Shown piece by piece: positions 6,346 to 64,000 of a stretch of 64,000 nt of DNA. The notes below the pieces were generated by a model that did not search any database, was not told the DNA's origin, and saw nothing but the letters and a program-made list of their open reading frames with translations. Source of the DNA: Mobula birostris (Eukaryota); assembly GCF_030028105.1 (NCBI RefSeq), contig NC_092383.1, positions 87,005,921 to 87,069,920 on the forward strand. The letters run 5' to 3'. The stretch's first letter is position 1. Every line of letters begins with the position of its first letter. The translations under genes were made by a program, and so were the position numbers.

Positions 6346-6593
6346 TTAGTTCATCCCTTACTTGTATGATGCCCTCATGTGAGTGCTGCACACATGAGGG
6401 CATCATACAAGGTTACTAGCCTTGTGTGTCCATGCCAGTCTTTTCTGGAGGTCAGTTGTCTTTCCAGAGTCAGTGACGTTTCTTGGTTGCTATCCAGTCT
6501 TTCCTGGAAGTCACTGGTGAACCAGAATGTGGAAACACACTGTGACATTAGTGGGCACTGACAATGATGACTACAATCAAATAAAAATCATTA

Positions 6594-7312: not shown

Positions 7313-7623
7313 TACTTGTGAAGAGCTGTGAGGATGTGAGGAGGGACAATGCTGTGGTCTTCTCTGTCTGTGTGAAATTCAATTATACCAATTGACAGAG
7401 TGGGCAGTTTCCTCAGTTCACAACAACAGCTTTAAATAAAACATCTTTTTTGTTATTATTGTGTTCTTTATCTTTTCTGTAATTTTGTGTTGCACTGGAT
7501 CCAGAGTAACAATTATTTTGTTCTCCTTTACACTTGTGTGTAGGAAATGACATAAAACAATCTTGAATCTGTTTCATGAAACTTAGTTTTAGCTGTCTAT
7601 TTTCTGAAGAGCTTCTCCCTCAG

Positions 7624-7921
7624 TTTTATGGGCAGAAAGACATGTAAGAGGATTTGTGGGAAGAGCGATCACAATCAATTTTCTCTATGCACCACTGTAT
7701 GACTCAGATCCAAAGTTACCAATGCACATTGTTAGTGAATACAAATGGGCAAAACGAGCAGTATGGAAGAATGACAATCAGAGATATCACAACCCAGGGA
7801 ATATTTAGTGTGACTACAGAGAATTTTGTCTTTCAAGACATAGGACTTTACAGATATGACAATATGATTACAACATCTGACAATCACCCAGATTTTGATG
7901 TGCCTCTATAAATATCTGACA
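7624..7921 (+). pseudogene. IgV pseudo-exon, V2 type
   Basis: Acceptor ttctccctcag|. Matches V2 (TNGQNEQYGRMTIRD) and V1. About 20-nt deletion removes the YLC/YWC motif (frameshift); B-strand Cys is Phe, F-strand Cys lost, in-frame TAA, donor GT changed to AT. Confidence 0.85.
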
Positions 7922-36575: not shown

Positions 36576-36851
36576 CTTCCAGCACAATGGCCCAAAGCTT
36601 TCTATGAAGACGTGACTGAAGGGCTACACACTATAACAGGGACCTTTCATTGAATCCAGTTTCAGGTCAGGGACCCCTCCTTAAATCTGGGTTAAAAGTG
36701 GAAGAGTGTCAGTGTAGAAAGCAGATCTGGTGGGAGATGTGATATGTAAGATAAAAGACTATACAGTTCATTCCCAGGTTTTGAATTCCTGACTTGTGTT
36801 CGACATATGAACAAACCTCTGTAATGTTACTTAATTTAAAAGTCCAGTGTA

Positions 36852-37425: not shown

Positions 37426-39185
37426 CAGGACTAAATGAAGGAAGAGTGAGTAAGGGATTTGAAAGTTGGAGGGGGAGGGGGAGATCCAAAATGATAGGAG
37501 AAGACAGGAGGGGGAGGGATAGAGCCAAGAGCTGGACAGGTGATAGGCAAAAGGGGATACGAGAGGATCATGGGACAGGAGGTCCGGGAAGAAAGACAAG
37601 TGGGGGGGGACCCAGAGGATGGACAAGAGGTACATTCAGAGGGACAGAGGGAGAAAAAGGAGAGTGAGAGAAAGAATGTGTGCATAAAATAAGTAACAGA
37701 TGGGGTACGAGGGGGAGGTGGGACCTTAGCGGAAGCTAGAGAAGTCGATGTTCATGCCATCAGGTTGGAGGCTACCCAGACGGAATATAAGGTGTTGTTC
37801 CTCCAACCTGAGTGTGGCTTCATCTTTACAGTAGAGGAGGCCGTGGATAGACATGTCAGAATGGGAATGGGATGTGGAATTAAAATGTGTGGCCACTGGG
37901 AGATCCTGCTTTCTCTGGCGGACAGAGCGTAGATGTTCAGCAAAGCGGTCTCCCAGTCTGCGTTGGGTCTCGCCAATATATAAAAGCCCACATCGGGAGC
38001 ACCGGACGCAGTATATCACCCCAGTCGACTCACAAGTGAAGTGTTGCCTCACCTGGAAGGACTGTTTGGGGCCCTGAATGGTGGTAAGGGAGGAAGTGTA
38101 AGGGCATGTGTAGCACTTGTTCCGCTTACACGGATAAGTGCCAGGAGGGAGATCAGTGGGGAGGGATGGGGGGGACAAATGGACAAGGGAGTTGCATAGG
38201 GAGCGATCCCTGTGGAATGCAGAGAGAGGGGGGTAGGGAAAGATGTGCTTAGTGGTGGGATCCCGTTGGAGGTGGCGGAAGTTACGGAGAATAATATGTT
38301 GGACCCGGAGGCTGGTGGAGTGGTAGGTGAGGACCAGGGGAACCCTATTCTCAGTGGGGTGGCGGGAGGATGGAGTGAGAGCAGATGTACGTGAAATGGG
38401 GGAGATGCGTTTAAGAGCAGAGTTGATAGTGGAGGAAGGAAAGCCCCTTTCTTTAAAAAAGGAAGACATCTTCCTCGTCCTAGAATGAAAAGCCTCATCC
38501 TGAGAGCAGATGCGGCGGAGATGGAGGAATTGCGAGAAGGGGATGACGTTTTTGCAAGAGACAGGATGAGAAGAGGAATAGTCCAGATAGCTGTGAGAGT
38601 CAGTAGGCTTATAGTAGACATCAGTGGATAAGCTGTCTCCAGAGACAGAGACAGAAAGATCTAGAAAGGGGAGGGAGGTGTCGGAAATGGACCAAGGAAA
38701 CTTGAGGGCAGGGTGAAAGTTGGAGGCAAAGTTAATAAAGTCAACGAGCTCTGCATGCGTGCAGGAAGCAGCGCCAATGCAGTCGTCGATGTCGTGAAGG
38801 AAAAGTGGGGGACAGATACCAGAATAGGCACGGAACATAGATTGTTCCACAAACCCAACAAAAAGGCAGGCATAGCTAGGACCCATACGGGTGCCCATAG
38901 CTACACCTTTAGTTTGGAGGAAGTGGGAGGAGCCAAAGGAGAAATTATTAAGAGTAAGGACTAATTCCTCTAGACGGAGCATAGTGGTGGTAGAGGGGAA
39001 CTGATTAGGTCTGGAATCCCTTTCAAATCCCTTACTCACTCTTCCTTCAGTTAGTCCTGACGAAGGGTCTCGGCCTGAAACGTCGACTGCACCTCTTCCT
39101 ACAGATGCTGCCTGGCCTGCTGCGTTCACCAGCAACTTTGATGTGTGTTGCTTGAATTTCCAGCATCTGCAGAATTCCTGTTGTT
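37426..39185 (-). mobile_element. Penelope-like element (Neptune type): 5'-truncated RT + GIY-YIG with an inverted pseudo-LTR
   Basis: GVAMGTRMGPSYA, (H)DIDD, Cys linker CKRNKCYTC, GVIYC...YIGET..R GIY-YIG motif; 12-bp TSD TACAAGGTTAAT (37414-37425 and 39186-39197); 39020-39185 is the element's 3' end inverted. Confidence 0.92.
39052..39089 (+). ncRNA. Minimal type I hammerhead ribozyme motif
   Basis: Stem I UAGUC/GACUG, core CUGACGA (39057-39063), short stem II AGG...CCU, GAAA (39077-39080), palindromic ACGU stem III, GUC cleavage triplet ending at 39084. Confidence 0.75.
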
Positions 39186-43992: not shown

Positions 43993-46147
43993 TGGGCCAT
44001 ATCTCAACGTAGAGACTGGAATGATCTCTTAAACTGTAACATCCATTCATACTTCTCTATATTCTTTTCGGTAAGACAAACAAAGAAGACAGAAGTTCTA
44101 ACCGCATCCTTTGCTCAGGGTGAACATTACACAGATGGCAGCAGTGACTAATACAATAGAGTCAGCACTCATACTATACATGTACAGAATTTAAGAAGAA
44201 ATACATTCACAGCTAATATACTGCACTGTTTTCCTCTAAAACAAATGTAACAAAAGCTCTCTATGCATACTGAATTATTTTATCATTTATCTATTTTATA
44301 CAAAGTGAAATTAAGTGTTTATAAACAAAAGCAAAGTCAGCAACTAAAATTCAGGTAAATATAAATCATCCACATTCTTGGATCACTTCAATGCTCACAT
44401 TGCAATGAAATCAAAAGCAACACACAGAAACTGCTGGAGAAAATCAGCAGGTCAGGCAGCATCTAAGGAAATGAAGAAGATAGTCAAGGTTTCATAGATC
44501 TGATTCTGAAATACTTCTGAATTACGTCTCCAATACGTGTGACATGTCAGAATTGTTATCCCTGATACTGAAACTCTACTCAGACTTCATCTACCCCAGG
44601 GAATCGCACAGCATGAATCTGGATAGATCACACTTTGAGTAACAATGAAAGATCTAACCAGGTGGACAGAGATATTGGGAAGCCAGCTAATGAGAAGGTG
44701 AGCAAAGGTATGCAGTTTCAGGGATCAGGGAGACCATGGGAGTGGGATAGGAAAGATAGAAATGTTCTCTCCTTTGTCAAGTCTGAACTGTCCATTTACT
44801 GTGCTCTATTATTCTGTGGGAAATAGAAACTACAAGGGTTGGCTACTCACACAGATCATTTACTGTCAAATAGATTTCATTTGCTTTAAGAATGGATCAG
44901 ATGTGGATTTTACCCCATTGTGATTGTGCAACTCCATTCTGAAGGATTCCCATCACATCTAACTGAAGCAAAGTGAAATTCCATCAGAGGTCTCGATATT
45001 ACACTGACAGATGGGATAGAGTTCAGAAGAGATGAGCTTTCAAGGTTCAAAGAGGAGAGAGATGAAGTCAAATATGAATGTTGAGTTTGCATGAAAAGCC
45101 CCTTCTACATCACACCCATTTCCCACTTTGCTCCCTCCTCAGCAGCAAATTCCCAAAAATTATGGCAACACAGGGAAAAAGCTGGTGGATCTCAACCGAC
45201 CAGGCAGAGCCTGTAGAAAAGAGTAAACAACCGACCTTTCAGGCTGAGTCACTTCTTCAGGACTCATGTCATGTCTTCCTCGTGTGTCGTGTTTGATTGA
45301 ATTATCAAGGCAAGTCCAGAACGATGTACAAATCGTAGGGTGCAAGTCCATAACTCCCCGAGATTCAGAACAGTGGGACATGGTAAAGTAGGTGTTAAAG
45401 AGGGCGCCTGACACTGTATGATCAGTGAGCATTCAAGAATTCATGTTGCAGAAGAGATTCACCAGACTGGTGCCTGTATTAGAAGACCATAAGACCCAAA
45501 AGGCATTGGAGCAGAATTAGACCTTCTCGACCCCATTCTCCTGCCTTCCCCCGTAACCTTTGATGCCTTTACGAATCAAGAACCTATCAACCTCCACTTT
45601 AAATATACCCAATGACTTGGCCTTCACAGCCTCTGTGACAGTGAATTCCACAGATTCACCACCCTATGTTCAAAGAAATTCTTCCTCACTTCTATTCTAT
45701 AGGAAAGTTCCTGTACTCTGAGGCTGTGCCGTCTGGTTGTAGACTCACTTACTGTAGGAATCATCCTCTTCACATCCACTCACTCGAGGCCTTTCAATAT
45801 TCAGTCCGTTCAATAAGATCCCACCTCATTCTGCTAAACTCCAGTGAGTATATTTTAAGTCAAGCAAAAAATAAAACTTCCGGAGGAACTTCGGGAGTCA
45901 TGTCGGATCTGCGGAGGCAGAGTGGTCAACATTTCAGATTAATTCCCTGTTTCAGGACACCTCCAGCCATTTACTGTTCTTTCAGATTAGAACATCTGCT
46001 GTTGCTTGTGTCCAATATTTCAACTCTTTTCACCATTTCATTCAGTCTTTAGGAATTGTTTAAGTATTTCTGTCTTGCTAAATATACCTAAGTGCTTTCC
46101 AGATTGTCACGTATCACACACCGGCTGTGTCACCCTTGGTTTTTGAT

Positions 46148-46180
46148 CAAACTTCCTGCTGCCTTCTTCCTCACTTTTAT
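46148..46180 (+). promoter_or_regulatory. Candidate ETS/PU.1 sites upstream of the leader ATG
   Basis: AAACTTCCTGC and CTTCCTCACTTT (reverse strand GGAAG cores) 60-95 nt before the ATG; short motifs, inference only. Confidence 0.3.
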
Positions 46181-46240
46181 TTCATAGTTATTTCTCTCTG
46201 AGGACAGACAGGTCCTGGCTGGGTCTCTGCGAACAAAACA

Positions 46241-46277
46241 ATGTGGGCTTCAATTCTTCTGATTGTTTTCCTACCTG
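46241..46277 (+). CDS. Leader (signal peptide) exon MWASILLIVFLP
   Basis: ATG at 46241, hydrophobic peptide, donor G|GTAAGT at 46277/46278 in phase 1; joins the V exon to give ...FLPVSGELWAEK. Confidence 0.85.
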
Positions 46278-49200
46278 GTAAGTGACAAATTGTGCTGGAC
46301 GTTTGCATAATCAGCGTTGGTTTAGGGGTTGTACACCGTTTTCAGAACAGTACTTGAATATCTGTAGATACGAAAGATGTCAGAAACTGGATTTCAGAGT
46401 TCACTCTCGGAGGAACTCAGTGGATCAACCAGCATCTGTCAGGGGGAGGGAAAATGTAAACAGTTTGGGTCAAGACCCTGTATCAAGTGTGAATGGAGGG
46501 GGAGATAGTGTACATAGGAGAGGGGGACATGTGAGACTGGGTTCAGGGACTCAGGAGGGGTGAAGCACAACAGACGAATGGAATGGGGAGGAAAAGGGGG
46601 GGAGTTTGGAGATGGGTGAGAGGTGGAAGCAGATAAGGAGAAAAGGGGAATAGTGTGGAGCCACTTGGGGGGAGAATATGTCCAGTTGGAGAAAAGTCCT
46701 GGAGGCTGTTAAGCAGAAACATCAGGTCTACCATTGCCGGAATCTGATCTCACTCTGCAGGCATCACTATGACAAACAACATTATTCTCTTGATATCAGT
46801 GTCTTTCCTTGGCCATTTTAGTGGGGCAATTAGTAAAGGACATTACTAGATGTGCAGTCCAAGGTACAGAGGATGTATCGACAGCATCCTGAGCAGCTGC
46901 ATTGCTGCCTGGTTCGGGAATTGCACCGTCTCGGATCGCAAGACCATGCAGCGGATAGTGAGGTCAGCTGAGAAGATCATCGGGGTCTCTCTTCCCGCCA
47001 TTACAGACATTTACACCACACGCCGCACCCGTAAAGCCAACAGCATTGTGAAGGAACCCACGCACCCCTCATACAAACTCTTCTCCCTCCTGCCATCTGG
47101 CAAAAGGTACCGAAGCATTCGGGCTCTCACGACCAGACTGTGCAACAGTTTCTTCCCCCAAGCCATCGACTCCTTAGTACCCAGAGTCTAGACTGACATC
47201 TACATCATTTATTATTATATTGTAGTTTGTCCTCTACTGTGCCTATAGCCTTGTTTATTAATTATTGTACTGCCCTGCACTGTTTTGTGCACTTTATGTA
47301 GTCCTGTGTAGGACTGTAGACCAGTGTAGTTTTCGTGTTGTTACATGTAGCATCATGGTCCTGGAGAAACGTTGTTTCGTTTTTACTGTGTACCAACAGT
47401 TTGTGGTCGAAATGACAATAAAAAGCGACTTGACTTGACTTGACTTGACTTGAGAGGTCTGTCCCTAAAGGCCTTTCTGATCTTGTTGGGATTTTGACAG
47501 CCTGGTAGTTGCTCATTATTATTGACATGTGGTTTTTAATTCCAGAAATAATTAATTAGATATAAACTCTCAATGTATCTTTACAGAAACTGAAGTCACA
47601 CCTGGATTTCTAGACACTAAAGTGGTAACGACTGCTATTGCACCACTTTCTAACTACACATAGAAATACTGGTCAGGTACAAAATATAAAATTTCCATCA
47701 GAACCAGAGGGCACAGTTTCAGACATCATGAGAGGTTTCCTTCTGCAATTTATAAACTTGTCCGTAAGCGAGGAGGAAGTCAGGTCATTGGCATCATGGA
47801 GAGAATTGAAACATAACCTCAAATGATCCTACCAACCCCCGACTCAACCCTGGAATACAAGAAACATATGCACACAAATCTCTATGTACAGCAGCTCTAT
47901 CTATCCCAAATAAACTAACTGGTATCTTTGTGTACATTTGAAAGGCTGAGATGATCTGTGTTAACTGAAAGCTCAAAATTGTGGCTCTTCCTCAGTGCTA
48001 CCTGAAAGGTCAGCCCTGGGTTTCTGCTCAGGACCCTGGAGTGGGAAGTGCACCCACAATGTACTGACACAGGGGAGAGAGCACTGACACAGTAACAGCA
48101 CTGACTGCACTTCACACCAAAATCATTGGCTGTGGTGTCATGGACCACATGCTGGATGTGACATGGACATGTATTTACCGTCATGTTCAAAGATATCTGT
48201 TTGCCTAAGTTGTCCCTTTTACCTCAAATCTGAAAGTGCTTCCCTCAGTTTCAGGTGAATTGTGGGCAGAGAAATATGTAAAAGGAATTGTGGGAAGAGC
48301 GATCACAATCGATTGTCACTACGAAGAAAAGTACCGCTCATACACAAAGTATTGGTGCCGTGGATGGACTCGTTACTGTTCAGTTTTAGTGGAAACAAAC
48401 TGGCAACACGGACAGGGTGGACGAGTGCCAATCACAGATAACCCAAAACAGAGAATATTTACTGTTACTATGGAGGATCTTCGCTCTAGTGATACAGGAT
48501 GGTACAGCTGTGGAATTACAACACCTGGTAATGATCCGGTGTTTAACGTACATCTACAAGTATCTGATGGTAGGTTTCTCAGTGATTGACTTTCTGCCTT
48601 CCAGAAAGTAAATGTCTCATCCATGTTTCCCCTGGGAAGGGTCAGTGCAGTAGATGTCCTGGGGAGTGATGATGTGCAGATCCCAGGGTTAAGCTTGTAG
48701 AATGGAGAACTGCCTGTGGATGTGTTTGAAGAACAACAATCTCCTCCTCCTCCTGCTCAGCTTCTGCACAGATTACAAGGTCTTTGTCCAGAGCCTGTCC
48801 ATCCCTCACTATCTCTGCATTAATATCAATGACACATGTTTCCCTGTCTATGGCAGGTCACTGAACCCAGTCACAATTTCATTTTCTCCTGAAAGCCTCT
48901 ATACATGTGACGGATATCTCACAAGTTGTGTCTCTAAACACTCAATGGCCACTTCATTAGGAACCTCCTATGCCTAATAAAGTGGCCATTGAGTTTATCT
49001 TTATGGTCTTCTGCTGCTATGGCCGATTCTTTACAAGGTTCAATGTGTTGTGTGTTCAGATGCTCTTCTGCACACCACTGTCATAAAATGTGGTTATTTG
49101 CATTCCTGTCATCTTTCTGTCCGCTTGAACCAGTCTGGCCATTCTTCTCTGACCTCTCACATTAACAAGGCATTTTGCTCACATAATTGCTGCTCACTGA

Positions 49201-52200
49201 ATATTTCTTGTTTTTCACATCATTCTTTGTAAACTCTAGTACTGTTGTCCATGAAAATCCCAGGACATCAACAGTTTCTGAGATACTCAAACCTCCCCTT
49301 CTGGCACCAACTATCATTCTATGGTCAAAGTCCCTAAGGTCACATTTCCTCCCAATTCTGATGTTTGGTCTGAACAACAACTGAACTATTGACCATGTCT
49401 GCATGTTTTTATGTACTGTGTTGCTGCCAGGTGATAGACTAAATAGATATTTGCTTTAACAAGCAGATGCACAGGTGTACCTAATAAAGTGGCAGAGTGT
49501 TTGATTTTCAGATGTTCATTCAGTGTCTGATTGTTGAATTCCTTTCCACAGAACCTGTGTCTGTTCCTGTGCTTCGATATCTGTCACAAGCAAATGTCTC
49601 ACATCTCGGGGGCTCCGTGTTAGTGTCCTGTGAGTCTCTTCATGGATCCCTTCCAATTCAGTACACATGGCATAAAAAAAACTCAACTGTGGATCAAAAG
49701 ATCTCAGACACCAATGAACTGGTTCTACCTCGTCAATCCTCAGATCTCCAGGCCCATCAATATTATTGCAATGCCTCAAATAGGCTTGGAATAAAATCCA
49801 GTGGAGTAGTAAATGTGACAATCTTCAACAATGGAGAGTTCTGTTGTTATGAACAGAAAAATAATGGCACCAGTAAGTTCTACTTTCAAGAGAGGATACA
49901 TGTAAATATTTATTTTGTTACTTTGTTATTGCTGCTCTTATACTTCTCGTGAGGGTAAGGAATTTCTTTGCATTTGTAGAAGCTACGAATTGCAGCCATC
50001 ATGGGGTAGAAATAAAGTGTAGTGAACAGTTAAGTCTGTCACTTCCTCCTGGAACATGTAGAGCATCACAAAGATAGTTGGACTTGCACATCCAGACATA
50101 TTGAGAGCCTTTCATTCATACTTCCAGCTTCTGCATAGAAGCTGCTCGAATGAGTGTTGAGCTGTGAGACAGGTGACACTGCCATAAAAACAAAAGGAAG
50201 GATATATCATAGAGCAAAAAATTATGGTGAGTTAGAGAATTGGGGAGCTTTTAAAAAGCAGAAGAAGGCAACAAGAAAATTATAAAGAGAGAAAAGATGA
50301 AATAAGAAGGAAAATGGAGACCAAGAGAATTACAGATATTTGAAGAGTAAAGAGAAACAAGATTGGATATCAGATCACTGGATAATGATGCTGAAGAAGT
50401 AATTTTGAGGGACGAAGAAATGGAGGATGAACTTATTCAGTATTTTGCATAATTTAAAGTAAAGCTCATTAATTTGTTAATTAGCAAGGGCATGAATGGT
50501 TATGGGAGAATGCAGGTGTGTTGGATTGAGAGGGATAATAAACCAGCCATGATGGAATGATGGAGTGGTAAGATTGTATGGGCCGAATGGCCTAATTCTT
50601 CTCCAATGTCTAATGGTCCCATTGTCTTATGGTCATCATTAGCTTTAGAATTTCCTGAGTACAGGAATGCCTGTCGTAGGTGAGAAACAGGCCGATGTTC
50701 AGCTTGACGCTCCGCAAGGCTGATTTATCTCTGTGCTGAACTAAGGCTGTGACCTGCAATTAACGGGCTCCTGAATCGTCTGAAGTGATGACTGGCATTG
50801 TGTCTGTGACTCACTTTTGTGAATTTCAGTTCTGAATATAATTTGCTTACTTTTATGGTTTGCATGAGTTTTTTTTCTGCACATTGTGTTTTTGGCAGTT
50901 TATTTTTCATGTATTCTATTTGGTTTCATTGTTTTGTGGCTGTCTGTGAGGGGACAAATCTTAAGGCTGTACATAGTATAAATACTATGTATCTATGTAT
51001 TAAATGTACTTTGAACTTTGAAGTTTGAAAGGTCACACCAATGCAATGGCATAGAATTCTGAATTTAACCTTTCAAAAGTGTGGTCCAGTTCAGAGAGGA
51101 TGCAGCAGAGTCACAGAGTTACAGGTTATGGAAACAGGGGCTTTGGCCCAAGTCCACAATGTCTTCCTGAGCGTCTCCCATTTCCCTACATTTGGCCCAT
51201 ATCCTTCTAAAGCTTTTCTGTAAATGAACTTGTCCAAATGAATTTTAGATAGTGTATTTGTACCCACCTCGAGCACTTCCTCTGGCAGCCTTTTCCACGT
51301 ACAAACTGCCCTGTGTGGAAGACACTGCCCCTCCAGGCCCTCTAAAACAGGAGAGTTCAATTCCATCAGCCATTCCTTTGACCACTTTCCTAGTTCAAAG
51401 TTCAAAGTAAAGTTATTGTCAAGAGATGTGCACTAAAAACAAGCTAGAGAATCATTTTTTGCAGTTGCCTAGAAAACAAAGAAACAAAATAGAATGCATG
51501 ACAAACCATACCATATAACCATATAAAAATTACAGCACGGAAACAGGCCATCTTGGCTCTTCTAGTCTGTGCCGAACTCTTACTCTCACCTAGTCCCACT
51601 GAACTGCACTCAGCCCACAACCCTCCATTCCTTTTCTGTCCAGACAGCTTTCCAATTTAACTTTAAATGACATCGAACCTGCCTCAACCACTTCTGCTGG
51701 AAGCTCGTTCCACACAGCTACCACTCTCTGATTAAAGAAGTTCCCCCTCATGTTACCCCTAAACTTTTGCCCTTTAACTCTCAACTCATGTCCTCTTGTT
51801 TGAATCTCCCCCACTCTCAACAGAAAAAGCCTATCCACGTCAACGCTATCTATCCCCCCTCATAATTTTAAACACCTCTATCAAGTCCTACCTCAACCTT
51901 CTACACTTCAAAGAATAAAAGACCAAACTTGTTCAACCTTTCTCTGTAACTTAGGAGATGAAACCCAGGTAACATTCTAGCAAATCTTCTCTGTACTATC
52001 TCAATTTTATTGACATCTTTCCTATAATTCGGTGACCAGAACTGTGCACAATACTCCAAATTTGGCCTTACTAATGCCTTGTACAATTTCAACATTACAT
52101 CCCAACTCCTATACTCAATGCTCTGATTTATAAAGGCCAGCATACCAAAAGCTTTCTTCACCACCCTATCCACATGAGATTCCACCTTCAGGGAACTATG

Positions 52201-55200
52201 CACTATTAATCCTAGCTCCCTCTGTTCTACTGCATTCTTCAATGCCCTACCATTTACCATGTATGTCCTATTTTGATTAGTTGTACCAAAATGTAGCACC
52301 TCACATTTATCAGCATTAAACTCCATCTGCCATCTTTCAGCCCACTCTTCTAACTGGCCTAAATCTCTCTGCAAGTTTTGAAAACCTACTTCATTATCCA
52401 CAACTCCACCTATCTTAGCATCAGCTGCATACTTACTCATCCAATTTACCACCCCATCATCCAGATCATTAATATATATGACAAACAACATTGGACCCAG
52501 TACAGATCCCTGAGGCACACCACTAGACACCGGCCTCCAATCTGACAAAGACTGACAAACATTTAATGTGCAAAGGAGGATGAATCATTCAAGTAATAAA
52601 AATATATAAACAAACAATACATGGAACATGAGACACAGAGTCCCTGAAAGTGAGTCCACAGCTGCGGTGTCAGTTCAGTGCAGAGGAGAGTGACACTGGT
52701 CCTGGCATAGGACCCAGGATCCTGCTCCTCCCTCTCAATGGTAGTACTGTGAAGAGAGGGAGATGGGACAAATACAGGCAGATGAGTTGGGCTCAGGTGG
52801 GGGAATCGTGCTGGCAAAGAGAAATGGGGCTGAACACTGGTTTGTTTTCCAGATCTCTTTGTAGACTTGGACAACACTTTCCACTGTCCATCACATTGCA
52901 GTGACATCAACAACCAATCGTGTCACCTACATTATCATTACAAATTATTATTATTGATGACAAATAACAGTGGTTAACAGATAACAACACTGATCCTGCC
53001 TGATGGTACTCTCACTGGTGATAAAGTCTGATGTTGTCATAAAACCAACACCTCATTACCACAATCTGATTCCTTCCACTAAGCCTATTCAGTATCCATC
53101 CAGCTACAGTAGTTTACCATGTAATCTCACAAATAGATCAGTCTACTATGCAAGACCTTGTCAAAGGCTATGCTAAACTCTATTGCCCTGTCCTCATCAG
53201 ACCCTTTGATCATTGCTTCAAAATTCTCAATCATATTTTTTTCAATGATTTCCCATGCACAAAATTATGTTAACTATCCAAAATCAAATCGTGCCTTTGC
53301 AAATTCAAGTAGATCCTGTCCTATATAATCACCGCCTGTAATTTACCTGCCACTGATCTTATGCTCACCTGCCTGGAATGGGACTGGATCAGTAATCTAT
53401 TGACTCAGAATTGTGGAAGCACACTGGGACATTAGTGGGCAGTGACAATGATGACTCCAATCAAATAAAAATCATTACTTCTGAAGAGCTGGGAGCAAGT
53501 GATGAGGGACGATGCTGTTTTCTTCTCAGTCAATGTGGAATTCAATTACACCATTTGACAGTGTGGCAGATTCCATAGAACACAGCGACAAATTTAAATA
53601 AAATGTCCTTTCTTATTATTTTTGTGTTCCTTATCTTATTGTGTTTATTTTTGTGTTACAAGGGACCAGAGTACAAAAATTTCATTCTCCTTTACACTTT
53701 TGTACAGGAAATGACAGTAAACAACATAGAATCTTGAATCTGCTTGTGTGAATTTGATTTTACCTGTCCATTTCCCCCAGTTTTACGTGCTTTACGGGCA
53801 AAAGATAAAGTAAGAGGATATGTGGGAAGAGCAGTCACAATCAACTGTCACTATGCACCAGTGTACCGTTCACACACAAAGTATTTGTGCTTCATGTGGG
53901 GTCACCAATGCACATCGTTAGTGAATACAAATGGGCAAAATGAGCAGTGTGGAAGAATGTCAATCAGAGATAATACATACCAGGGAAAAAGTGAATAATT
54001 TCCCAGAGCTAAAATATTGTTATGATCTCCCATTCCACCAGCTGGTCTGACCGTGTGTTCCATGCAGTTACTACCTCATTGTAAAAAAAAACTTGTTTCT
54101 CAAACATCATTTAAACTTGCCCCTAATCATCTTAAAACTATGCTCACAATTATTTGATATTTCAACCCTGGGAAAAAGATTCTGACCATCTATCTATGAC
54201 TTCTATAACTTTATAAACTTCTACCACATCTCTTCTCAGCCTCTGACTCTCCAACGAAAACACACCAAGATTGTCCAAATACTGCCCACAGCTTATACAC
54301 TCCAGCGCTGGTAACATTTATTTAGTCATTCATTTATTAATTCATCATCTATCAATCTATCCAGCTAGCTCACTATTTATTTATTTATCTATCTATTTAT
54401 CGGTTTTGTTTATTTATTGAGGAAGAGCGCGGAATAGGCCTTTCTAGCCCTTCAAGTCCTGTCACCCAGCTTCTCCAGATTTAACTCAAGCCAAAACACT
54501 GGACAATTTTCAATGACTAATTAACCCACTAACCGGTACTTCTTTAGACTGTGGGATGAAACCGGAGCACCGAGAGTAAACGCCTGCAGTCACGGGGAGA
54601 ATGTACAAACACCTTACAGCCAGTGGCAGGAATTGAACCCGGGTTGCTGGGACTGTAAAACATTGTGGTAACCATCGTGTTACCATGCCAACCCTGGTGA
54701 CATCATGGTGAGCCTCCTTACCCTCTCCAAAACCTCAACATCCTTCCTATAGTGTTGCAACCAGAAATACATATTATGATCCTAATGTGACCTAATCAAT
54801 GTTTTATGAAGCTACAAAATGCCTTGTCAGCTTTAGTCTCCAACATGTAGAATGAAGAAGGCAAATGTGCAGAATGCTTTCATTACCATTATGTCCACTT
54901 GTGTTGCCACTTTCAGGGAGCAATTGACTTGAACCCCAAGAACTCTCTGTACATCAATTCTAAAGGGATCCCGATATTAAATTCCAGGTGACATCAAACT
55001 TCCCTAATGTATGAGGAGTGTTTGAAGGCTCTGGGCCTGTACTTGCTGGAGTTTAGAAGAATGAGGGAGGATCTCATTGAAACCTATCAAGAATTGAAAA
55101 TTTCAGTGGATGTAGAGAGGATGTTTCCAATAGTGCGAGCATCTAGGTCTAGAGGGCACAGACTCAGAATAGATGAACGTCCTTTAAAAGAGAGTTAAGG

Positions 55201-58200
55201 AGGAATTTTGTGAGGCAGAAGCTGATGAATATGTGGAATTCATTGCCAAAGTAAACTGTGGGTATATTTAAAGTGGAGTTTGATAGGTTATTGATTATAG
55301 GGTGTCAAAGGTTACAGAGAGAAAGAAGGAGAATAGATTTAGAGGGATAATAAATCAGCCATGATGGAATGGTGGAGCAGACTCAATGGGCTGAATGGCC
55401 TAATTCTGCTCCTACGTACTAACAGGTTCCCTTCCTGCTGTAGGCCACTGAAACAATTACAATTATACTCTCTCCCTCAAGTCGCCACTCAGTTTGTATT
55501 TATCTAACAATTTTCTGCTTTCACATAATGGGGAGTTTTCCTGGACACCCACAAATGCTGCCTTTGCAGAGTCAAGCTGTTAGGTGCCACTTTTAGACTG
55601 TCTCCTTACTGCTGAGAGAGAGTGACTGACATAGTGTCTTCACTGCTGTTCTGTTCTGGAGCTATGTTGTGTTCTGGAATAATGCCAGACATGGCAGTTC
55701 AGGCAGCTCTGAGGATGCAGAGACCCAGTGGAGTAGATGAGCTGCTGAGGTTCCAAACTGGTGGGTCCTGCTTGAGATACAGAACTGCTGAAATCTTTTG
55801 TGTGCTTGATTTTCAGATGTCACTGATTCTTTTCCACAGAAAATATGTCTGTTCCTTTGCTTCGATTTTCACCACAAACAAATGGCTCAAGTTGTGGGGA
55901 CTCCGTGTCAGTGTCCTGTGAGTCTGCCAATGGATCCCTTCCCATTCAGTACTCATGGTATGAAAAGACCCCATCCATGGATTTAAATATATCTAATACC
56001 AATAAACTGGATCTACTTTGCCAATCCTTAAAATACAACACCCATCTGTATTATTGCAAAGCCTCAAATGCTAATGGAGAGAAGTCCAGTGACGTATTCA
56101 ATGTATCCATCTCCAACAGTGTCAGCACCTGCAGATATGTGATTGAAGTCAACAGCATGGGTAAGTGGTGCATGGTTTGATTCTTTCTGATGGCCAATGG
56201 AGTACAACTGAATGACTGATTTGTGCTGGATATTGTGTTGTTGGAACTTCACTCAGGAGCATGGAGTGTCTGTTGTCACCACCTTTCAGAGAATGAAAAG
56301 CCTTTCGACACAGCAGTCCAAACGTAAGCCTCTCAGCACAGGGTCTCGTGCCACTGATCTGCTCTCATTGGCTGGGTGTGAATGTGTCTCGTCTGGTAAT
56401 ATTTATGTCATTAATTAAGATAGTACTTGTAAGGTAACCCACTTCAAAGCTCAAAGTAAATTTAAATTATGTGTATATATCACCATGTACTACCCTGAGA
56501 TCCATTTTCCTGAAGACATTCACAGTAGGAACTTTTGCAATAGATACAAATAAATAAGACAGAATCAATTAAAAACTACACACATCAAAGATGGACAAAC
56601 AACCAATGTACAAAAGAAGACAAACTGTACAAATACAAATGAAAGAAATTACTAACAAGCAAATAAATAAATAATATTGAGAACATAAGTTGCAGAGTCC
56701 TTGAAAATGAGTCCATTGGTTGTGGAATCAGTACAGTGCTGAAGTGAGCAAAGTTATCCGCATTGGTTCAGGAGCCTGATTGTTGAAGGATAATAACTGT
56801 TTCTCAACCTGGTGGTGCGAGACCTCCTTCTCAATGGCAGCAGTGAGAGGAAACATGGCCTGGATTGCAGCAGTCCTCGATGGTGGGTGCTGTTTTCTCA
56901 TGGCAGGGCTCCTTGTAGACTTTTACCCATATTTGCTCATACTGTAATGAGTCATAAAATCAAAGCAGTTGTATCTTGCAAATAGTAAGAGTACGCAAAT
57001 AACATTCAGGGCTGAAGTTTATGAAAGTGAGTCCACAGCCATGAAGCCAGTCACAGCTGGTCGAGGACCCATCAGTTGCAGGCCACAGCCTCAGTTCAGC
57101 ACAGAGATGAGTAAACCTTGCACAGCAGTTAGCCCCAGATCAGACTGTCCCTCTTGTCCAGCCCTGACACCCTGACCTTTTCAATCTGTCCAGATGCTGA
57201 ACTCGGCCAAACAGCAGGTCATTCCTTGTTCTCGGACCCAGTCTCTACCTCTCAATACACTCTCATGCCTGGGTCCCGCTGCCCCAATTCAGCTCGTACG
57301 AGAACTTTCCATTCTGGACCGAAGGTTAAATCGACCAGACTTTGACTTGTTCCTTGCTCTCGGGCCACTGATATGGTGTGCAGATTTGGTCTGATGAAAG
57401 ATTTTATTGTTATGGAAGGAGGCAAGCAAAGGATCAGCAAACTGATTTCTGGAGATCATAGGGTTTATTGCAAGGCAGAAAGTAGGCAATCACCAATAAT
57501 AGAGGAATGGTGATGGAAAATTGATGTGATTGAAAACCAATAAATCTCCAGGTTCTGATACTCTATGTCCCAGAGAACATAAGGAATTAGCGAGAAAAAT
57601 ATAGATGTGTTGCTGGCCATTTCTCCCCAATGGATTGGAGAGAAGTTAACCACTCTATTTTAAAAAGTATGTACAGAGAAAAGAGAGAATGATAGAGCAA
57701 TTAGCCTGACATTGGTATCAGGAAATGTGGTGAAGAGAACAAAAGACAAAACCAATGTACTGGATTGGCCTTGTGTTTCTTTGTGCCCATTATAAATTCC
57801 CCCATTTCTGTCTGTTAGATATCCTATATTTTAATTAATCTTCTCTTCACATGCCTATTGAAGTTTTCATGCAGGTATACATGTTCCCTACAAACTTGCT
57901 CACGTTCTATGTTTTCAATGTTTTAATCGATTACTTTGTTTTGCTTTGAATTCTAAACTACTTCAAATACTCAGCTTTGTTGCTTTTGCAGAACATGACG
58001 CATTTCGTTGGATCTAATTGATTCACAGATATGTTTTGAGTGTTGTGTTTGATCATCTAAAAGCTTCTGAGGGGATCACTTTAATGCATGAAATATTCCC
58101 TGAGGGATGATGGAGTTCATGTTGAAAGGGATGTTTCATAGTCTGCAGGGTCCGGAATGGGGACAATTCCAGGAGAATATTGATCATCAGTTTTTTCTTG

Positions 58201-59639
58201 TACATAAGTGTATTTCACTGTGCAGTTTGAACAGATCTTTCAAAAATGAAGAGCTTTATTCAAATATCTGAGTGCTCACTGGAGGGGTAGAAACTGTCCC
58301 ACCAGCTAGAAAATTAAAGAAGTTATATGCATAAAAGATTGTTGCCAGGATTTTTTGACAGCTTCTGAGAATGATGTATCTGTCACAAGTGCAAACGCAA
58401 AATGCCGGACATACATTTTACACACATGTTCTCCCAGTTACTATGTGGGTTCCTCCAGGTGCTCCGGTTTCCTCCCATGCTCCAAAAACACACGTGTTAG
58501 TATTAGTAATGCGTAGGTAAGATACTTTGGCACTGGAAGCATGGAACATTTGCAGCTGCCCCCAGAACAAATTCTGTGTTGGTCTTTGATGCAATTGATG
58601 CATTTCACTGTAAGTTCTGATGTACATGTGGCAAATAAATCTCATTTTAATCTTTATATGTCGCATTGGGTAATAGATCACTTTTGGTCCACCATGATCA
58701 AGTACCCATTGGTCTAACAATTGTGCTCTTTTGATCTTGCAAGTACAAAGCAAGAAACTGAATTTTACTGTCTTTCAACAGGGCCGATTCATTTCTGTGA
58801 AAATACTGGGAAAGAAACGACGACAACTGATTCAACAAATAAAATGTAAAGTACAAGCTTCTCTCTACAGGTGGTTTCAAACAGGCCCACCTGGGAGAGA
58901 AATTTGTTTCTCTATAACTGGTGATAAACATGCTTGGCATAATTAACTTCAATGAAATCATGTATTGGAAACTGAGTATTCCTGATTTTCTTGTCCAGAT
59001 GTCAAAGATAATTTTCTTACACTAAATATTTAATAATTTAATTATAGAAGTTGAAGCTCATGTCCTGAGCCATAAAGTCATTGTTATATATTAGAACAAC
59101 AGGCTCTTCAGCCTGACTCGTCCAAGCCAAACAAGAGTCCAGACAGCCACGAAACAAAGAAAACCATGGGGGCCGTTCTAAGATCGGGTTCGGCTACATG
59201 GTCAGCAATGGTGTCTGTCAGAGAAGAAACCGCCAATCAATCCTTTTATGCAAGAGTTCTGATGAAATGTTTGTAAAGGAACATGGTAGGATTCCTGAAT
59301 GGCCTGGACAGTAGTTATTCTCTAACCTACATCTCTATCATTGGTCATGATCGCATTTCTACTTGTGAGACTTTGGAGTGAACAGATTAGCTGTTGTAAG
59401 TTCCCACACAGTCAACAGTGTGTAATGATAATTTTCTGAGCCGCAGACAACCTGAGCTCATGAAAAATGCTGTGTAAATGTCAGACTTTACAAATGGCCA
59501 AGAATACATGGTGACCCAGGACTGACCCTTTCCTTTTCTTTACCGCAGATACACTTACACACCTATGATCAGTGTCATTGGGATTCTTCTCATACTACTT
59601 GCCGTTTGTCTACTTTGCTACCTGAAGAGAAAAACAGGG
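46241..59639 (+). CDS. Multi-exon CD300/pIgR-like (MDIR-like) Ig-superfamily receptor: L-V-C2-(half V)-C2-stalk-TM; 3' cytoplasmic part unresolved
   Basis: Seven exons with canonical AG/GT sites and matching phases (1,1,1,1,1,2; TM exon ends phase 0). The joined frame is open: 1155 nt without the half-V exon, 1365 nt with it. Family call rests on the V-domain motifs. Confidence 0.8.
46845..47455 (+). mobile_element. Rex1-type 3' fragment in the leader-V intron
   Basis: YRGCIDSILSSCIAAWFGN...CNSFFPQAI; AATAAA followed by a (GACTT)n tail. Confidence 0.85.
48249..48569 (+). CDS. IgV-set exon V1, CD300/pIgR type
   Basis: Acceptor ttccctcag|, donor G|GTAGGT, 321 nt, phase 1-1. Protein has IDCHY...KYWCRGWTRYCSVLV...FTVTMEDL...DTGWYSCGI: the canonical B-F cysteines plus the extra C-C' pair typical of CD300/pIgR/TREM domains. 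Confidence 0.95.
49552..49872 (+). CDS. IgC2-type exon C2a
   Basis: Acceptor tttccacag|, donor A|GTAAGT, 321 nt, phase 1-1; EPVSVPVL...VSCESLHGSLPIQYTW...YYCNASNRLG. Confidence 0.9.
51505..52548 (-). mobile_element. CR1 3' fragment
   Basis: ORFs 51901-52548 and 51590-51838; (accatat)n tail. Confidence 0.9.
53781..53990 (+). pseudogene. Truncated IgV exon V2 (N-terminal half only), possibly still spliced via a cryptic donor
   Basis: Acceptor tttcccccag|; VLRALRAKDKVRGYVGRAVTINCHY...KYLC...CTSLVNTNG...IRDNTYQG, after which V homology stops, with a stop at 53996-53998. Candidate phase-1 donor A|GTGAAT at 53990/53991. Confidence 0.8.
54420..54690 (-). mobile_element. tRNA-derived SINE (V-SINE-like)
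   Basis: Reverse strand reads B-box-like gggttcaattcc, then the core gtgctccggtttcatcccacagtctaaaga. Confidence 0.7.
55840..56160 (+). CDS. IgC2-type exon C2b
   Basis: Acceptor ttttccacag|, donor G|GTAAGT, 321 nt, phase 1-1; paralog of C2a (VSCESANGSLPIQYSW...YYCKASN); several N-x-S/T sites. Confidence 0.9.
58410..58655 (+). mobile_element. SINE (V-SINE-like) 3' part
   Basis: Core gtgggttcctccaggtgctccggtttcctcccatgctccaaa; tail aataaatctcattttaatct. Confidence 0.65.
58782..58845 (+). CDS. Thr-rich stalk exon GPIHFCENTGKETTTTDSTNK
   Basis: Acceptor ttttactgtctttcaacag| (phase 1) and donor AT|GTAAAG (phase 2), matching the phase-2 acceptor of the TM exon. Confidence 0.65.
59549..59639 (+). 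CDS. Transmembrane exon (I)YTYTPMISVIGILLILLAVCLLCYLKRKTG
   Basis: Acceptor tttccttttctttaccgcag|, about 20 uncharged hydrophobic residues then a KRK stop-transfer motif, donor GGG|GTAGGT (phase 0). Confidence 0.8.
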
Positions 59640-60167
59640 GTAGGTTTTGTTTTTCCTTTTTATTTCATGATGGATATGTTAGCTAGCTGCTGAATCTTTA
59701 ACGAACTTGATTTGGCCACAGTCAACAAGAAGCCAGGATTAGAGTGCTGATGTGTTGGTTCACAACACATGAATGAATGGTGTGGTTTCCACTGTAACCT
59801 GGTGACTCCATTATTCTCGAAACGTCGGGCAATGGAATCTCACCTCAAGTGTGGAATAGCAGAGAACCAAGAGGCTGGGTAGAAGAAAGATTTAGATTGT
59901 GTCACCTGTTGTACTCAGTTTTGGGGAATTAGCTGTTGTATTTGAAAATATATTCAATAAGCTGTTCCTCAGTACAAACTCCAATTAAATGCAATCATTT
60001 GGCCGATATATATGTAAAAACATACTCTCGTGGAATTCTCAAAACAAAGGGTGCATCTTTTACCAATCTACCACTCACTGTATATCACTGAATAAAATTC
60101 CATGCTCTCATCGTACAAACTTGTGGTAGATTATGTCATGGGTCGCTTTATTGAGATGATCCTGAGT

Positions 60168-62990
60168 TGGGCATCACAGTAGTGTAGCAGTTAGTGTGAC
60201 ATTATTACACCTCTGAGCATTTTGGAGTTATACTTTATACTCTATAGTCGCCAAGCAATTGATACTAGAATGTATAAGCATCATAGCGATATTTGATTCT
60301 GCGCTTCCTGCTCCCTGGATTACAAATTGATAGTAAATATTAAAAATTTAAATTATAAATCATAAACAGAAAATAGAAGAATGGAAGTAAGGTAGTGCAA
60401 AAAAACCCGAGAGGGAGGTCCAGATATTTGGAGGGTATGGCCCAGATTCGGGTCAGGATCCGTTCAGCAGTCTTATCACAGTTGGAAAGAAGCTGTTCCC
60501 ACAGCTGGCCGTACGAGTCTTCAAGCTCCTGAGCCTTCTCCCGGAGGGAAGAGGGATGAAAAGTGTGTTGGTTGGGTGGGTCGTGTCCTTGATTATCCTG
60601 GCAGCACTGCTCCAACAGCGTGCGGTGTAAAGTGAGTCTAAGGATGGAAGATTGGTTTGTGTGATGTGCTGCGCCGTGTTCACGATCTTCTGCAGCTTCT
60701 TCCAGTCTTGGACAGGACAACTTCCATATCAGGTTGTGATACACCCTAGAAGAATGCTTTCTACAGTGCATCTATAAAAATTAGTGAGGGTTTTAGGGGA
60801 CAGGCCAAATTTCTTCAATTTTCTCAGGAAGTAAAGGCACTGCTGGGCCTTCTTGGCAGTGGACTTTGCTTGGTTAGACCAAGTCAGGTCATTTGTGATA
60901 TTGACCCCGAGGAACTTAAATCTTCTGACTTGTTCCACTTGCACACCACCGATGTAAATTGGGTCGTGCGGTCCGCTACTCCTGCTGAAGTCAACAACCA
61001 ATTCCTTCATCTTGCTGACGTTGAGGGAAAGGTTATTGTCTTTGCACCATGCCACCAAGTTCTTAATTTCCTCTCTGTACTCAGACTCATCATTACTCGA
61101 GATACGGCCTACAATTGTTGTGTCATCAGCAAACTTATATATTGAATTTGATGGAAACTTGGCTACACAATCATGGGTGTACAGTGAGTACAGCAGGGGG
61201 CTGAGTACACAGCATTGTGGGGCACCGGTGCTCAGAGTGATTGTAGAGGAGAGCTTGTCCCCTATTTTTACAGCCTGTCTGTGACGAAATTGAAGATCCA
61301 GCTGCAGATCTGAGTGCTAAGGCCCAGGTTCCAGAGCTTAGGAATCAGTTTATTTGGAATAATGGTATTAAAGGCAGAGCTGTAGTCAATGAAAAAGAGC
61401 CTTACGTATGCGTCTTTATTCTCCAGGTGTTCTAAGGAGGAATGTAGGGCCAGAGAGATGGCATCTGTTGCTCCGGTAGGCAAATTGCAAAGTGTCGAGG
61501 TTGACCGGTAGGCTGTGGTTGATGTGTGCCATCACCAATCGCTCGAAGCACTTCATAGCAATTGATGTCAGAGCCACAAGTCTATAGTCATTCAGGCATG
61601 CCACCTTGCTCTTCTTCAGCACTGGGATTATCGTTGCTTTCTTAAAGCACGAGGGGATCTTAGACTGAAGCAAGGAGCAGTTGAAGAAGTCAGCAAACAC
61701 TCCAGCTAGCTTGCTTGCACAGGCCCGGAGAACCCATCCTGGACGCCATCTGGGCCCATTGCCTTCCATGGATTTATCTTCAGGAAGGCCCTTCTAACAT
61801 CCTCCTCGGTGACGATGAATCTCGATGCCACCAGGTCCGGTTCATCCGGAGGGAGTGGGACGCCCCTCTTCTGTTGGAATCTTGCGTAGAATACGTTAAG
61901 TTCGTCAGGAAGCGAAGCGCCACAGTTATTGATATTCCCAGCCTTTTCTTTACGCCCAGTGATCTCATTTAGACCCTGCCATAGTCTACTGGCATCCCTC
62001 TGGTTAGCCTGGACTTCTAACTTGGCTCGATATTGCCTCTTGGCGCCCTTAATGGCTTTCCGGAGTTCACGCCTGGATTCCGTGTTGCGACTGGTATTCC
62101 CGGACCTAAAAGCTGCAGCTCTAGGCTTCAAAAGGGACTTGACCTCATAATTCATCCAAGGTTTCCGGTTAGGGAATACCCAGATCATCTTGCGAGACGC
62201 ACAGCCCTCCGTGTATTTCCAAATAAAGTCCGTGACAGCTGAGGCATACTCATCGAAGTTAGCTGCCGAGTCTTTGAATAGTAACCAGTCCACCGATTCA
62301 AAGCGGTCACGGAGGACCTCATCCATTTCCTCCGTCCAACGTAACACTACTTTTGACACCGTGACCTCCCGCTTCAGTTTCTGTTTGTAAGCCGGGAAGA
62401 GGAGTACGGCCTGATGGTCCGATTTTCTGAAGTGAGGTTGTGGGATGGAACGGTAGGCATCCTTGACTGCTGTGTACCAGTGGTCAAGTATATTCAGGCC
62501 TCCAGTGGGGCAGGAGACATGTTGGTATAACTTTGTCAGCACCTTTCTGAGGTTGGCCTGGTTAAAGTCCCCAGCTGTAGTGAGCAAAGCCTCCGGATAC
62601 CTGGTCTCAAGTTCACTGATGTTGGCATACAGTATGTTTAGAGCACACTCCACGTCCACCTGGCGGGGAATGTAGACCGCTGTCAGTATGACCAAGGTGA
62701 ATTCCCGTGGCAGATAGTAGGGACGACACTTCACCGATAGGTGTTCCTGGTCTGGGCTGCAGGAGCTTGTCAGTGCCAGTGTCCGAGCACCACGCAGATT
62801 TCGGAGTTCAATTCTGGTGTCATTCTGTAAGGACTCTCCACGTCCTCCCCATTGGATGTGTGGGTTTTTCTGGGGTGCTCCAGTTTTCTCTCACAGTATA
62901 GAGACATACCAGGTATGGTATTTGATCATTGCAAATTGTCTCATGATTAGGTTAAGGTTAATCAGGTTTGTCAGGATTAATAAGTTGACA
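60168..62990 (+). mobile_element. tRNA-derived SINE split in two (60168-60229 and 62798-about 62990)
   Basis: A-box-like gtagtgtagcagttag left of the LINE; B-box-like ggagttcaattc and V-SINE core to the right. Confidence 0.7.
60230..62797 (-). mobile_element. Rex1/Babar-type LINE (endonuclease + RT, frameshifted) inserted in a SINE
   Basis: CRPYYLPREFT...SDH endonuclease motif, GPDGV...[13 protein letters not shown] motif; 11-bp TSD with one mismatch ATTTTGGAGTT (60219-60229) / ATTTCGGAGTT (62798-62808). Confidence 0.9.
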
Positions 62991-64000
62991 TGGGTCAAAG
63001 GGCCAGTAGGGCCTACTCCACAATGATCACCAAATAAATAAATAATCTTCTGTCCCTGAAACAGACTTTGTAACCAGTGAAGAGAACTGTGCATACAATG
63101 ATCTTCTGTGTGTTATTATCAAATGGGGAAATGGAGTTGATCACTGGAAAATAAACCCCCTGCAACCTTCAACTCATTGGCTGACAGAATATAACTCATT
63201 GGCTGAATATTATAACTAATAATTCAACTGCTCTCCGTAATGTAGTTCTAGGCCTCTCTCTCCCTCCCCCAACAAACCAGACAGTTGCTTTCAGCGTAGT
63301 ATTATTCCCCAGTCACTGCTTGTTGCAAAGATCTGAACAAAAGGAGTGCATTCTTTTCCAAAGAGAAATTCCCTAAATGATCAATACCTGAGATATAGGC
63401 AGAAAAAGTGCTAGGAACACTCAGCATGTTCGTTGAGGGTAGGACATTTGGATTCTGTATGAAATTGTTGATCTCAATGTTGAATTCAAAAGGTGGTTTT
63501 AATGGTCTGTTGGATAATAAGGTGATTTTTATTTTGGGCAGTTTGTTCCTTCCGCCTGAGGGACAATCTGCCACAGAGTCCTGGAGAGATCTGTGAAATG
63601 TTCATCGGACAGTGTGAATATTGTCAGGTAATCTGTTCCACCATACTGTGAAGGAGATATATTATCTGAAAGCACACACAGACATTGCAGGAAATGCTCA
63701 GTAGATCAGACAGAATTTGTAGTAATAAAAAGAAAAATAAAATTTCAAATCCATATCCTTCATTACAATGTTCAAAGATGGAAAAACTCCGTTTTCAGTA
63801 GCACAGAAGGCAGGGTATAAAACAATACGATCCTTTCTGAATACTGTGGAGTAACCAGAGCAGAGGTTTGCTCTGTGTGGAGAATCATTATTGTGTTACA
63901 GCTGGGATTGCCGTGGACGGTAGTTCTGAGATTGTTTGGGTGCCATGGTAGCTCAAAGGGCTATATATATATAAATGAATGTTTCTATCTGTTCCTGACA

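Follow-up and report, generated by a model that had tools for sequence, protein, structure and literature searches.

Here we report a new member of the modular domain immune-type receptor (MDIR) family in the genome of the ray Mobula birostris, a family that is already known and has close relatives in public annotation. The gene lies in a stretch of 64,000 nucleotides (RefSeq assembly GCF_030028105.1, contig NC_092383.1, positions 87,005,921 to 87,069,920 of the forward strand), which we call the window and in which all positions are counted from the first letter. Its predicted product is a type I membrane protein of the immunoglobulin (Ig) superfamily composed of a CD300/pIgR-type V head, two FCRL-like C2 domains and an uncharged transmembrane segment. 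A further exon, which corresponds to an internal V domain of its relatives and which we call V2, is dead and has decayed in place. We consider it likely that the locus is one chondrichthyan MDIR gene in which this V exon was lost by decay, and that it encodes a type I receptor whose tail, carrying motifs like the immunoreceptor tyrosine-based inhibitory motif (ITIM), would be encoded downstream.

Gene model and domain architecture

Six core exons on the forward strand make up the gene. The leader exon (46241-46277, 37 nt) encodes MWASILLIVFLP plus one base, has A at -3 and G at +4 of its ATG, and ends in a phase 1 donor (ctg/gtaagt). It is followed by the exons of V1 (48249-48569), of the membrane-distal C2a (49552-49872) and of the membrane-proximal C2b (55840-56160), each of 321 nt and phase 1-1, and then by a stalk exon of 64 nt (58782-58845; GPIHFCENTGKETTTTDSTNK) and a transmembrane exon of 91 nt (59549-59639), both with AG/GT borders. 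All six have a polypyrimidine tract and AG on their 5' side and GT(A/R)(A/G)G on their 3' side; joined, they give 1155 nt that are free of stops and encode 385 amino acids. The transmembrane exon ends in KRKTG at the donor ggg/gtaggt with the frame still open, so the gene is incomplete within the window. Because all Ig exons are symmetric, C2a can be spliced directly to C2b with the frame kept, and the exon phases permit the in-frame loss of any Ig domain. An earlier model-made reading of this DNA, the sequence-only reading, had proposed the same six exons with the same borders, the three Ig exons of 321 nt and phase 1-1, and a transmembrane segment without a charged residue, and our analysis upholds all three points. 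It had also counted V2 into a seven-exon open frame. Six of these exons stand, whereas V2 is decayed, and a seven-exon frame of 1365 nt is obtained only by way of a cryptic donor at 53990.

The ends of the model agree with those of related proteins. The leader of the Hemitrygon akajei protein XP_072886821.1 (P0014; MWLSIILFGFLPVSG) matches the window leader exon, and the sequence immediately 5' of this exon (46136-46240) matches the N-terminal extension of a second Hemitrygon protein, XP_072886306.1 (P0040). The stalk motif GPIHFCENT is common to Hemitrygon and Hypanus relatives. The transmembrane segment MISVIGILLILLAVCLLCYL contains no charged residue, and its exon is 70-79% identical to the transmembrane regions of P0014 and three further relatives (P0153, P0154 and P0159).

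V1 combines a V-set fold with a second cysteine pair on strands C/C', the two features of the CD300/pIgR/TREM group. Pfam assigns it to V-set (E 3e-13), and the solved structure that it matches best as a single domain is mouse CLM-1/CD300LF (82 bits, E 2e-22), followed among structure-database sequences by CD300A, CD300C, pIgR D1 (47 bits), NKp44, FCMR and TREM. When V1 is aligned to pIgR D1, its additional cysteines (KYWC ... RYC) coincide with those of pIgR. Of 30 family V domains, at least 90% retain Cys36 and Cys43, and a C-C' disulfide bond would be expected. An AlphaFold (AF2) model built on 30 family V domains has a mean predicted local distance difference test (pLDDT) score of 91 and superimposes onto CD300lf with a TM-score of 0.91-0.92 and a root-mean-square deviation of 1.5 Å at 40-41% identity; CD300a, pIgR D1, NKp44 and TREM2 rank behind CD300lf. 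In a tree of 74 V domains, V1 is placed among the N-terminal V domains, and it is 75-79% identical to those of ray relatives. The alignment with pIgR D1 and the fold match to CD300lf thus bear out the initial assignment of V1 to the V domains with an extra C-C' cysteine pair.

Both C2 exons are called as Ig_2 / Ig_C17orf99, with Ig_2 matches at E 2.9e-8 for C2a and 5.6e-6 for C2b; the Pfam matches of V1, C2a and C2b are far stronger than expected by chance. Among solved structures, C2a is closest to human FCRL5, with a summed E of 8e-28 and an E of 7e-6 for the best single repeat; CAR, titin and JAM follow at a clear distance. A fold search with the C2a model (pLDDT 81) returned generic Ig matches only (E about 1e-3, TM-score 0.4-0.6), so the resemblance to FCRL is one of sequence alone. 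The C2 type proposed for these domains is retained, and the sequence matches specify it further as FCRL5-like. Identity between C2a and C2b is 75.5% at the DNA level and 53% at the protein level. A tree of 75 C2 domains places C2a in a 26-row clade of distal C2 domains with a Shimodaira-Hasegawa-like approximate likelihood ratio test (SH-aLRT) support of 99; its nearest rows, at 77-78% identity, are the second domains of Hemitrygon P0163 and of Mobula hypostoma P0042 and P0196. C2b belongs to a 15-row clade (SH-aLRT 98), most rows of which directly precede the stalk and transmembrane segment in ray proteins, and its identity to these relatives reaches 84%.

Relationship to MDIRs and probable unity of the gene

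A full HMMER scan with V1 returned 2623 proteins at E <= 0.001. The closest matches (57-79% identity) consist of alternating V and C2 modules, 2 to 11 per protein, and come from Hemitrygon akajei, Hypanus sabinus, Mobula hypostoma, M. birostris, Pristis pectinata, skates, several sharks and Callorhinchus. Their annotations read 'polymeric immunoglobulin receptor-like', 'Fc receptor-like protein 5', 'A33 antigen-like' or 'uncharacterized', and names such as 'pIgR-like' and 'FCRL5-like' are misleading. Among the V1 matches are the UniRef entries Modular domain immune-type receptor 2, 3 and 5 of Rostroraja eglanteria. By BLASTP, the joined model is 58% identical to MDIR2 over 250 amino acids (E 3e-97), 61.5% to MDIR5 (E 3e-88) and 62% to MDIR3 (E 2e-86). 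Single domains of the window gene are 75-84% identical to annotated ray proteins of Mobula, Hemitrygon and Hypanus.

Like MDIR2, MDIR3 and MDIR5, the window gene is built of homologous CD300/pIgR-like V and C2 blocks in variable numbers. Its ectodomain draws on few Ig subfamilies, which form four domain-type clades and vary in number and order among the relatives, and it has the uncharged transmembrane type of MDIR2 and MDIR3. With regard to membership in a large clustered multigene family, what the window itself offers is a second dead V exon of the internal type, with its upstream intron, at 7313-7920. The window gene differs from the skate MDIRs in that its host is a ray, its V-C2-C2 order results from the decay of an internal V, and its tail was not found within the window. 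The original reading had placed the gene as an MDIR-like receptor of batoids with V and C2 domains in variable arrangement. Direct homology to the three skate proteins confirms the first point, the closest relatives are indeed myliobatiform rays, and the range of module numbers agrees with the last. MDIRs were reportedly first described from skate cDNAs by Cannon et al. in 2006 (Immunogenetics 58:362, cited in PMC3031540), and little later work on them was found in the literature searched.

Other receptor families share only parts of this architecture. CD300 (CMRF35-like) proteins and pIgR D1 have, as V1 does, a V domain with extra C-C' cysteines. However, CD300 proper has a single V and no further Ig domains, whereas two C2 exons follow V1 here, and pIgR consists of V-type domains only, whereas the window gene adds FCRL-type C2 domains. 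Human FCRL5 has the C2 pattern CE..GS.PI.Y..Y / YYC..N in common with the window C2 domains, but FCRL ectodomains are composed of Fc receptor-type C2 domains only, without the CD300/pIgR-type V that forms the N-terminal domain of the window gene.

Two annotated ray proteins are especially informative. P0014, a protein of 597 amino acids annotated as 'polymeric immunoglobulin receptor-like', has the order leader-V-C2-V-C2-stalk-transmembrane-tail, with the domain types ordered as in the window. Its identity is 71% for V1, 66% for C2a, 74% over 66 residues for V2 and 74-80% for C2b, and its stalk reads GPIHxCENT; unlike the window gene, it has an intact V2 and a tail of 100 amino acids with three ITIM-like motifs. 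The best whole-length match is Mobula hypostoma XP_062921369.1 (P0042, 'Fc receptor-like protein 5 isoform X3'), at 65% over 379 amino acids. It has the V-C2-C2 form of the window gene, but ends in another transmembrane type. The window gene looks like a mosaic of these two proteins, and its relationship to them is not simple one-to-one orthology.

Within P0014, each window domain is most similar to its positional counterpart, and each falls into the matching domain-type clade, both in the V tree (n = 74) and in the C2 tree (n = 75). Together with a single leader-like exon and a single stalk and transmembrane set in the whole window, these positional matches lead us to read the locus as one gene. 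An alternative is that there are two transcription units, in which leader, V1 and C2a would form a protein that is secreted or lipid-anchored through read-through at C2a, and the V2 remnant, C2b, stalk and transmembrane exon would be what is left of a second gene that lacks a leader. The distance between C2a and C2b, an intron of nearly 6 kb that holds a reverse-transcriptase fragment, is in keeping with such a division, as is the existence of relatives consisting of V-C2 only. In addition, reading on past the C2a donor leads to a hydrophobic C terminus (open reading frame 49497-49952), with an AATAAA at 50011. A second leader exon was sought between C2a and V2 and across the window, however, and none was found, which favours one gene over the two genes with leaders of their own that the sequence-only reading had named as its refutation. 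Several rays have single proteins in which the four domain types follow one another in this order, V-C2a-C2b proteins appear in the annotation of Mobula and Hypanus, and C2b agrees with the family at all of its conserved positions, which would be unexpected for an unused remnant. Moreover, a short form could exist beside the full one as an isoform of a single gene. On balance, two units appear very unlikely.

Two read-through products deserve mention beside the single-gene model. Read-through of the C2a donor (49873-50030) adds the hydrophobic C terminus ...IYFVTLLLLLLYFS-stop and could yield a short V-C2 isoform. Read-through of the stalk donor (58782-58851) ends in ...TDSTNKM-stop, and Hemitrygon P0040 likewise ends in ...TPNKM; a soluble isoform produced by retention of the stalk intron may be conserved. 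Neither AATAAA nor ATTAAA was found within 600 nt downstream of this second stop.

The gene had also been proposed to be built by duplication of a V-C2 cassette. The duplication itself is supported, but it did not take place in this gene: from the domain trees, it is judged to be ancient, the four domain types predating the divergence of Mobula, Hemitrygon and Hypanus. A recent local duplication of the cassette was considered and rejected, as only exons align between the two cassettes (71-75% in DNA) and the four domains lie in old, separate clades.

Decay and predicted skipping of the internal V exon

V2 (53781-54100) retains an intact acceptor at 53781 and 70-71 open codons (210-213 nt; open only from 53781 to 53995), after which a stop follows at 53996-53998. 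Its 3' third carries several indels by comparison to V1 and stops in all frames, the DxGxYxC motif of the F strand is absent together with its cysteine, and the normal donor position reads CTTG in place of GGTAGG. A weak cryptic in-frame donor at 53990 (aaa/GTGAAT) would give an exon of 210 nt encoding 70 residues, a truncated V without the second canonical cysteine. The origin of the remnant can nevertheless be traced: it is 74-79% identical over 66 amino acids to the internal V domains of P0014 and P0009 and belongs to a 21-row clade of internal V domains only (SH-aLRT 99). V2 is dead and does not provide an optional domain that could still be used.

The isoforms P0196 and P0042 of Mobula hypostoma, as well as P0202 and P0223 of M. 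birostris, differ by exactly the 107-amino acid block of the internal V. With V2 dead, we read the skip that is optional in these relatives as having become obligatory here, or nearly so. Ancestrally, the order was V-C2-V-C2, from which the window copy has lost the internal V exon by decay in place, and splicing from C2a to C2b would produce the V-less form that is annotated as an alternative isoform in Mobula.

A second dead exon of the internal V type lies at 7313-7920 (+). Over 7313-7801 it matches 53476-53987 at 75%, an alignment that takes in about 300 nt of the intron before the exon, and a further stretch, 6523-6593, matches 53406-53477 at 93%. This copy has another residue in place of the first cysteine (TINFLY), carries a deletion of about 20 nt and shifts frame near 7715, and its surroundings contain no C2, stalk or transmembrane exon. 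It resembles a piece of some other member of the family. The window is also rich in retroelements, with long open reading frames at 11455-13599, 34545-36587, 37726-39135 and 51901-52548, all on the reverse strand, that match reverse transcriptase (E 1e-32 and 5e-24), endonuclease/exonuclease/phosphatase and, weakly, GIY-YIG (possibly Penelope-like). A reverse-transcriptase fragment is located in the intron between C2a and V2, and approximately 30% of the gene span has matches elsewhere in the window.

Cytoplasmic tail, proposed function and significance

Relatives with the transmembrane type of the window gene continue KRKNR-ESKH..TQE-MAT.EENIVYADL...VYANV/M...TYADI, a tail with three motifs of the ITIM-like or YxNM kind. 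The tails of MDIR2 and MDIR3 are of this type too, and the ITIM-like motifs of the group are IVYADL, IVYANV and VTYADI. In the window, tblastn with the tails of 14 relatives gave only a weak match at 63064-63105, to the P0014 motif EMATSEENIVYADL (E 0.04). This match lies in an uncertain tail-like frame (63065-63219, +; xFVTSEENCAYNDL...LTEYNSL...stop) that is unique in the window, contains the tyrosine motifs CAYNDL and TEYNSL and is preceded by a good acceptor (tcttctgtccctgaaacag/). The frame bears a weak likeness to the beginning of the ITIM tail of the relatives and may represent a diverged or duplicated tail exon. A tail look-alike at 59814-59873 was rejected because it has no acceptor. 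Most or all of the tail probably lies beyond the window, and an inhibitory tail and function are proposed for the window gene by extension from its relatives.

Several points weigh against a maintained inhibitory receptor as we propose it. The exon junctions are predicted from sequence, and we know of no function or ligand for any MDIR. Codon 60 of C2a (49729-49731) is CGT, encoding Arg, at a position that is Cys in 30 of 30 other family C2 domains, C2b (TGC) among them; this C60R replacement may break an intradomain disulfide. Position 98 of C2a, beside the conserved Cys97, has turned to Cys (49843-49848). A small hidden Markov model of the ESKH...TQE tail exon found no such exon in 59640-64000 (best E 1.5). 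Only a weak donor, at 59643, is in phase with the frame at 63065; joining this frame to the strong donor at 59639 gives KRKTG-TL-stop, that is, a stop after two codons. Finally, the V2 acceptor is intact, and inclusion of V2 could introduce a premature stop or, by way of the cryptic donor, an in-frame half-domain.

Alternatively, much of this could be read as a decaying copy, either a unitary pseudogene or a non-signalling remnant in a large multigene cluster, that makes no full inhibitory receptor. The dead V2 exon, C60R at an otherwise invariant cysteine, the membrane-proximal tail exon not found in the 4.4 kb downstream and the early stop that the strong transmembrane donor meets in the only tail-like frame all fit this alternative, as do the introns filled by insertions of transposable elements and a dead V exon of the same type at 7.6 kb. 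Still, all six exons retain open frames and consensus splice sites, and the Ig exons are of exactly 321 nt. At family-conserved positions, meaning those conserved in at least 90% of family domains, V1 deviates at 1 of 30, C2a at 2 of 35 and C2b at 0 of 34, which is within the range of annotated relatives and a sign that the gene is maintained. Single cysteines are also missing from internal V domains of annotated relatives, and the tail may simply be located beyond the window. We regard a decaying copy as unlikely.

An activating or adaptor-coupled receptor in place of an inhibitory one is also conceivable. The family has a second transmembrane cassette (..W[KN][VM]GRW[LF]LF...), which starts with an Arg and is followed by a short tail without tyrosine motifs. 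It was found in P0042, P0232 and P0204 (MDIR5), but not in the window, and it suggests that paired receptor types exist in the family. The occurrence of this type (KVGRW...) in MDIR5 and Mobula P0042 makes paired activating and inhibitory forms plausible in the cluster. By contrast, the transmembrane segment of the window gene is uncharged, and its type carries ITIM-like tails in all full-length relatives inspected, in agreement with the earlier suggestion that a form coupled to DAP12 or FcRgamma is unlikely. We consider an activating receptor extremely improbable.

Under the preferred reading of a single, maintained MDIR gene, the mature chain would derive from a precursor with a signal peptide and comprise V, distal C2, proximal C2, a short stalk containing cysteine and an uncharged transmembrane helix. 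By homology with CD300, FCRL and MDIR2/MDIR3, V1 would be the ligand-binding head and expression would be on leukocytes. The C2 domains, as in relatives, would hold V1 away from the membrane. Phosphorylated ITIM-like tyrosines of the downstream-encoded tail may then recruit SH2 phosphatases and damp leukocyte activation, as the relatives' tails would predict.

The combination of CD300/pIgR-like and FCRL-like domains in one receptor of a cartilaginous fish bears on when Fc receptor-like molecules arose. According to Akula et al. 2014 (PMC4016189), cartilaginous fish have no pIgR or FcRL homologs, and bony fish are the first to have both. The sequence matches presented here show that the former statement is too strong at the level of domains. 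The MDIR work of 2006 had reportedly implied as much. A bolder proposal, which we hold to be distinctly doubtful, is that the family, with its pIgR/FCMR/CD300-type V and FCRL-type C2 domains, represents the missing Fc or polymeric Ig receptors of cartilaginous fish or the state before the split of pIgR/CD300 from FCRL. If this were true, the conclusion of a bony-fish origin in PMC4016189 would be contradicted, and the window copy, with its V exon that died in place, would show how domain number changes in this family.

In conclusion, the window gene adds one well-resolved genomic example to the MDIR family and leaves established views unchanged. Particular to it are the internal V exon that is dead in place, the C60R replacement and a tail not seen in the window. 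The modular variety of the family rests on Ig exons of 321 nt and phase 1-1, from which a domain may be removed either by splicing, as annotated in Mobula, or for good when its exon decays, as in the window gene.

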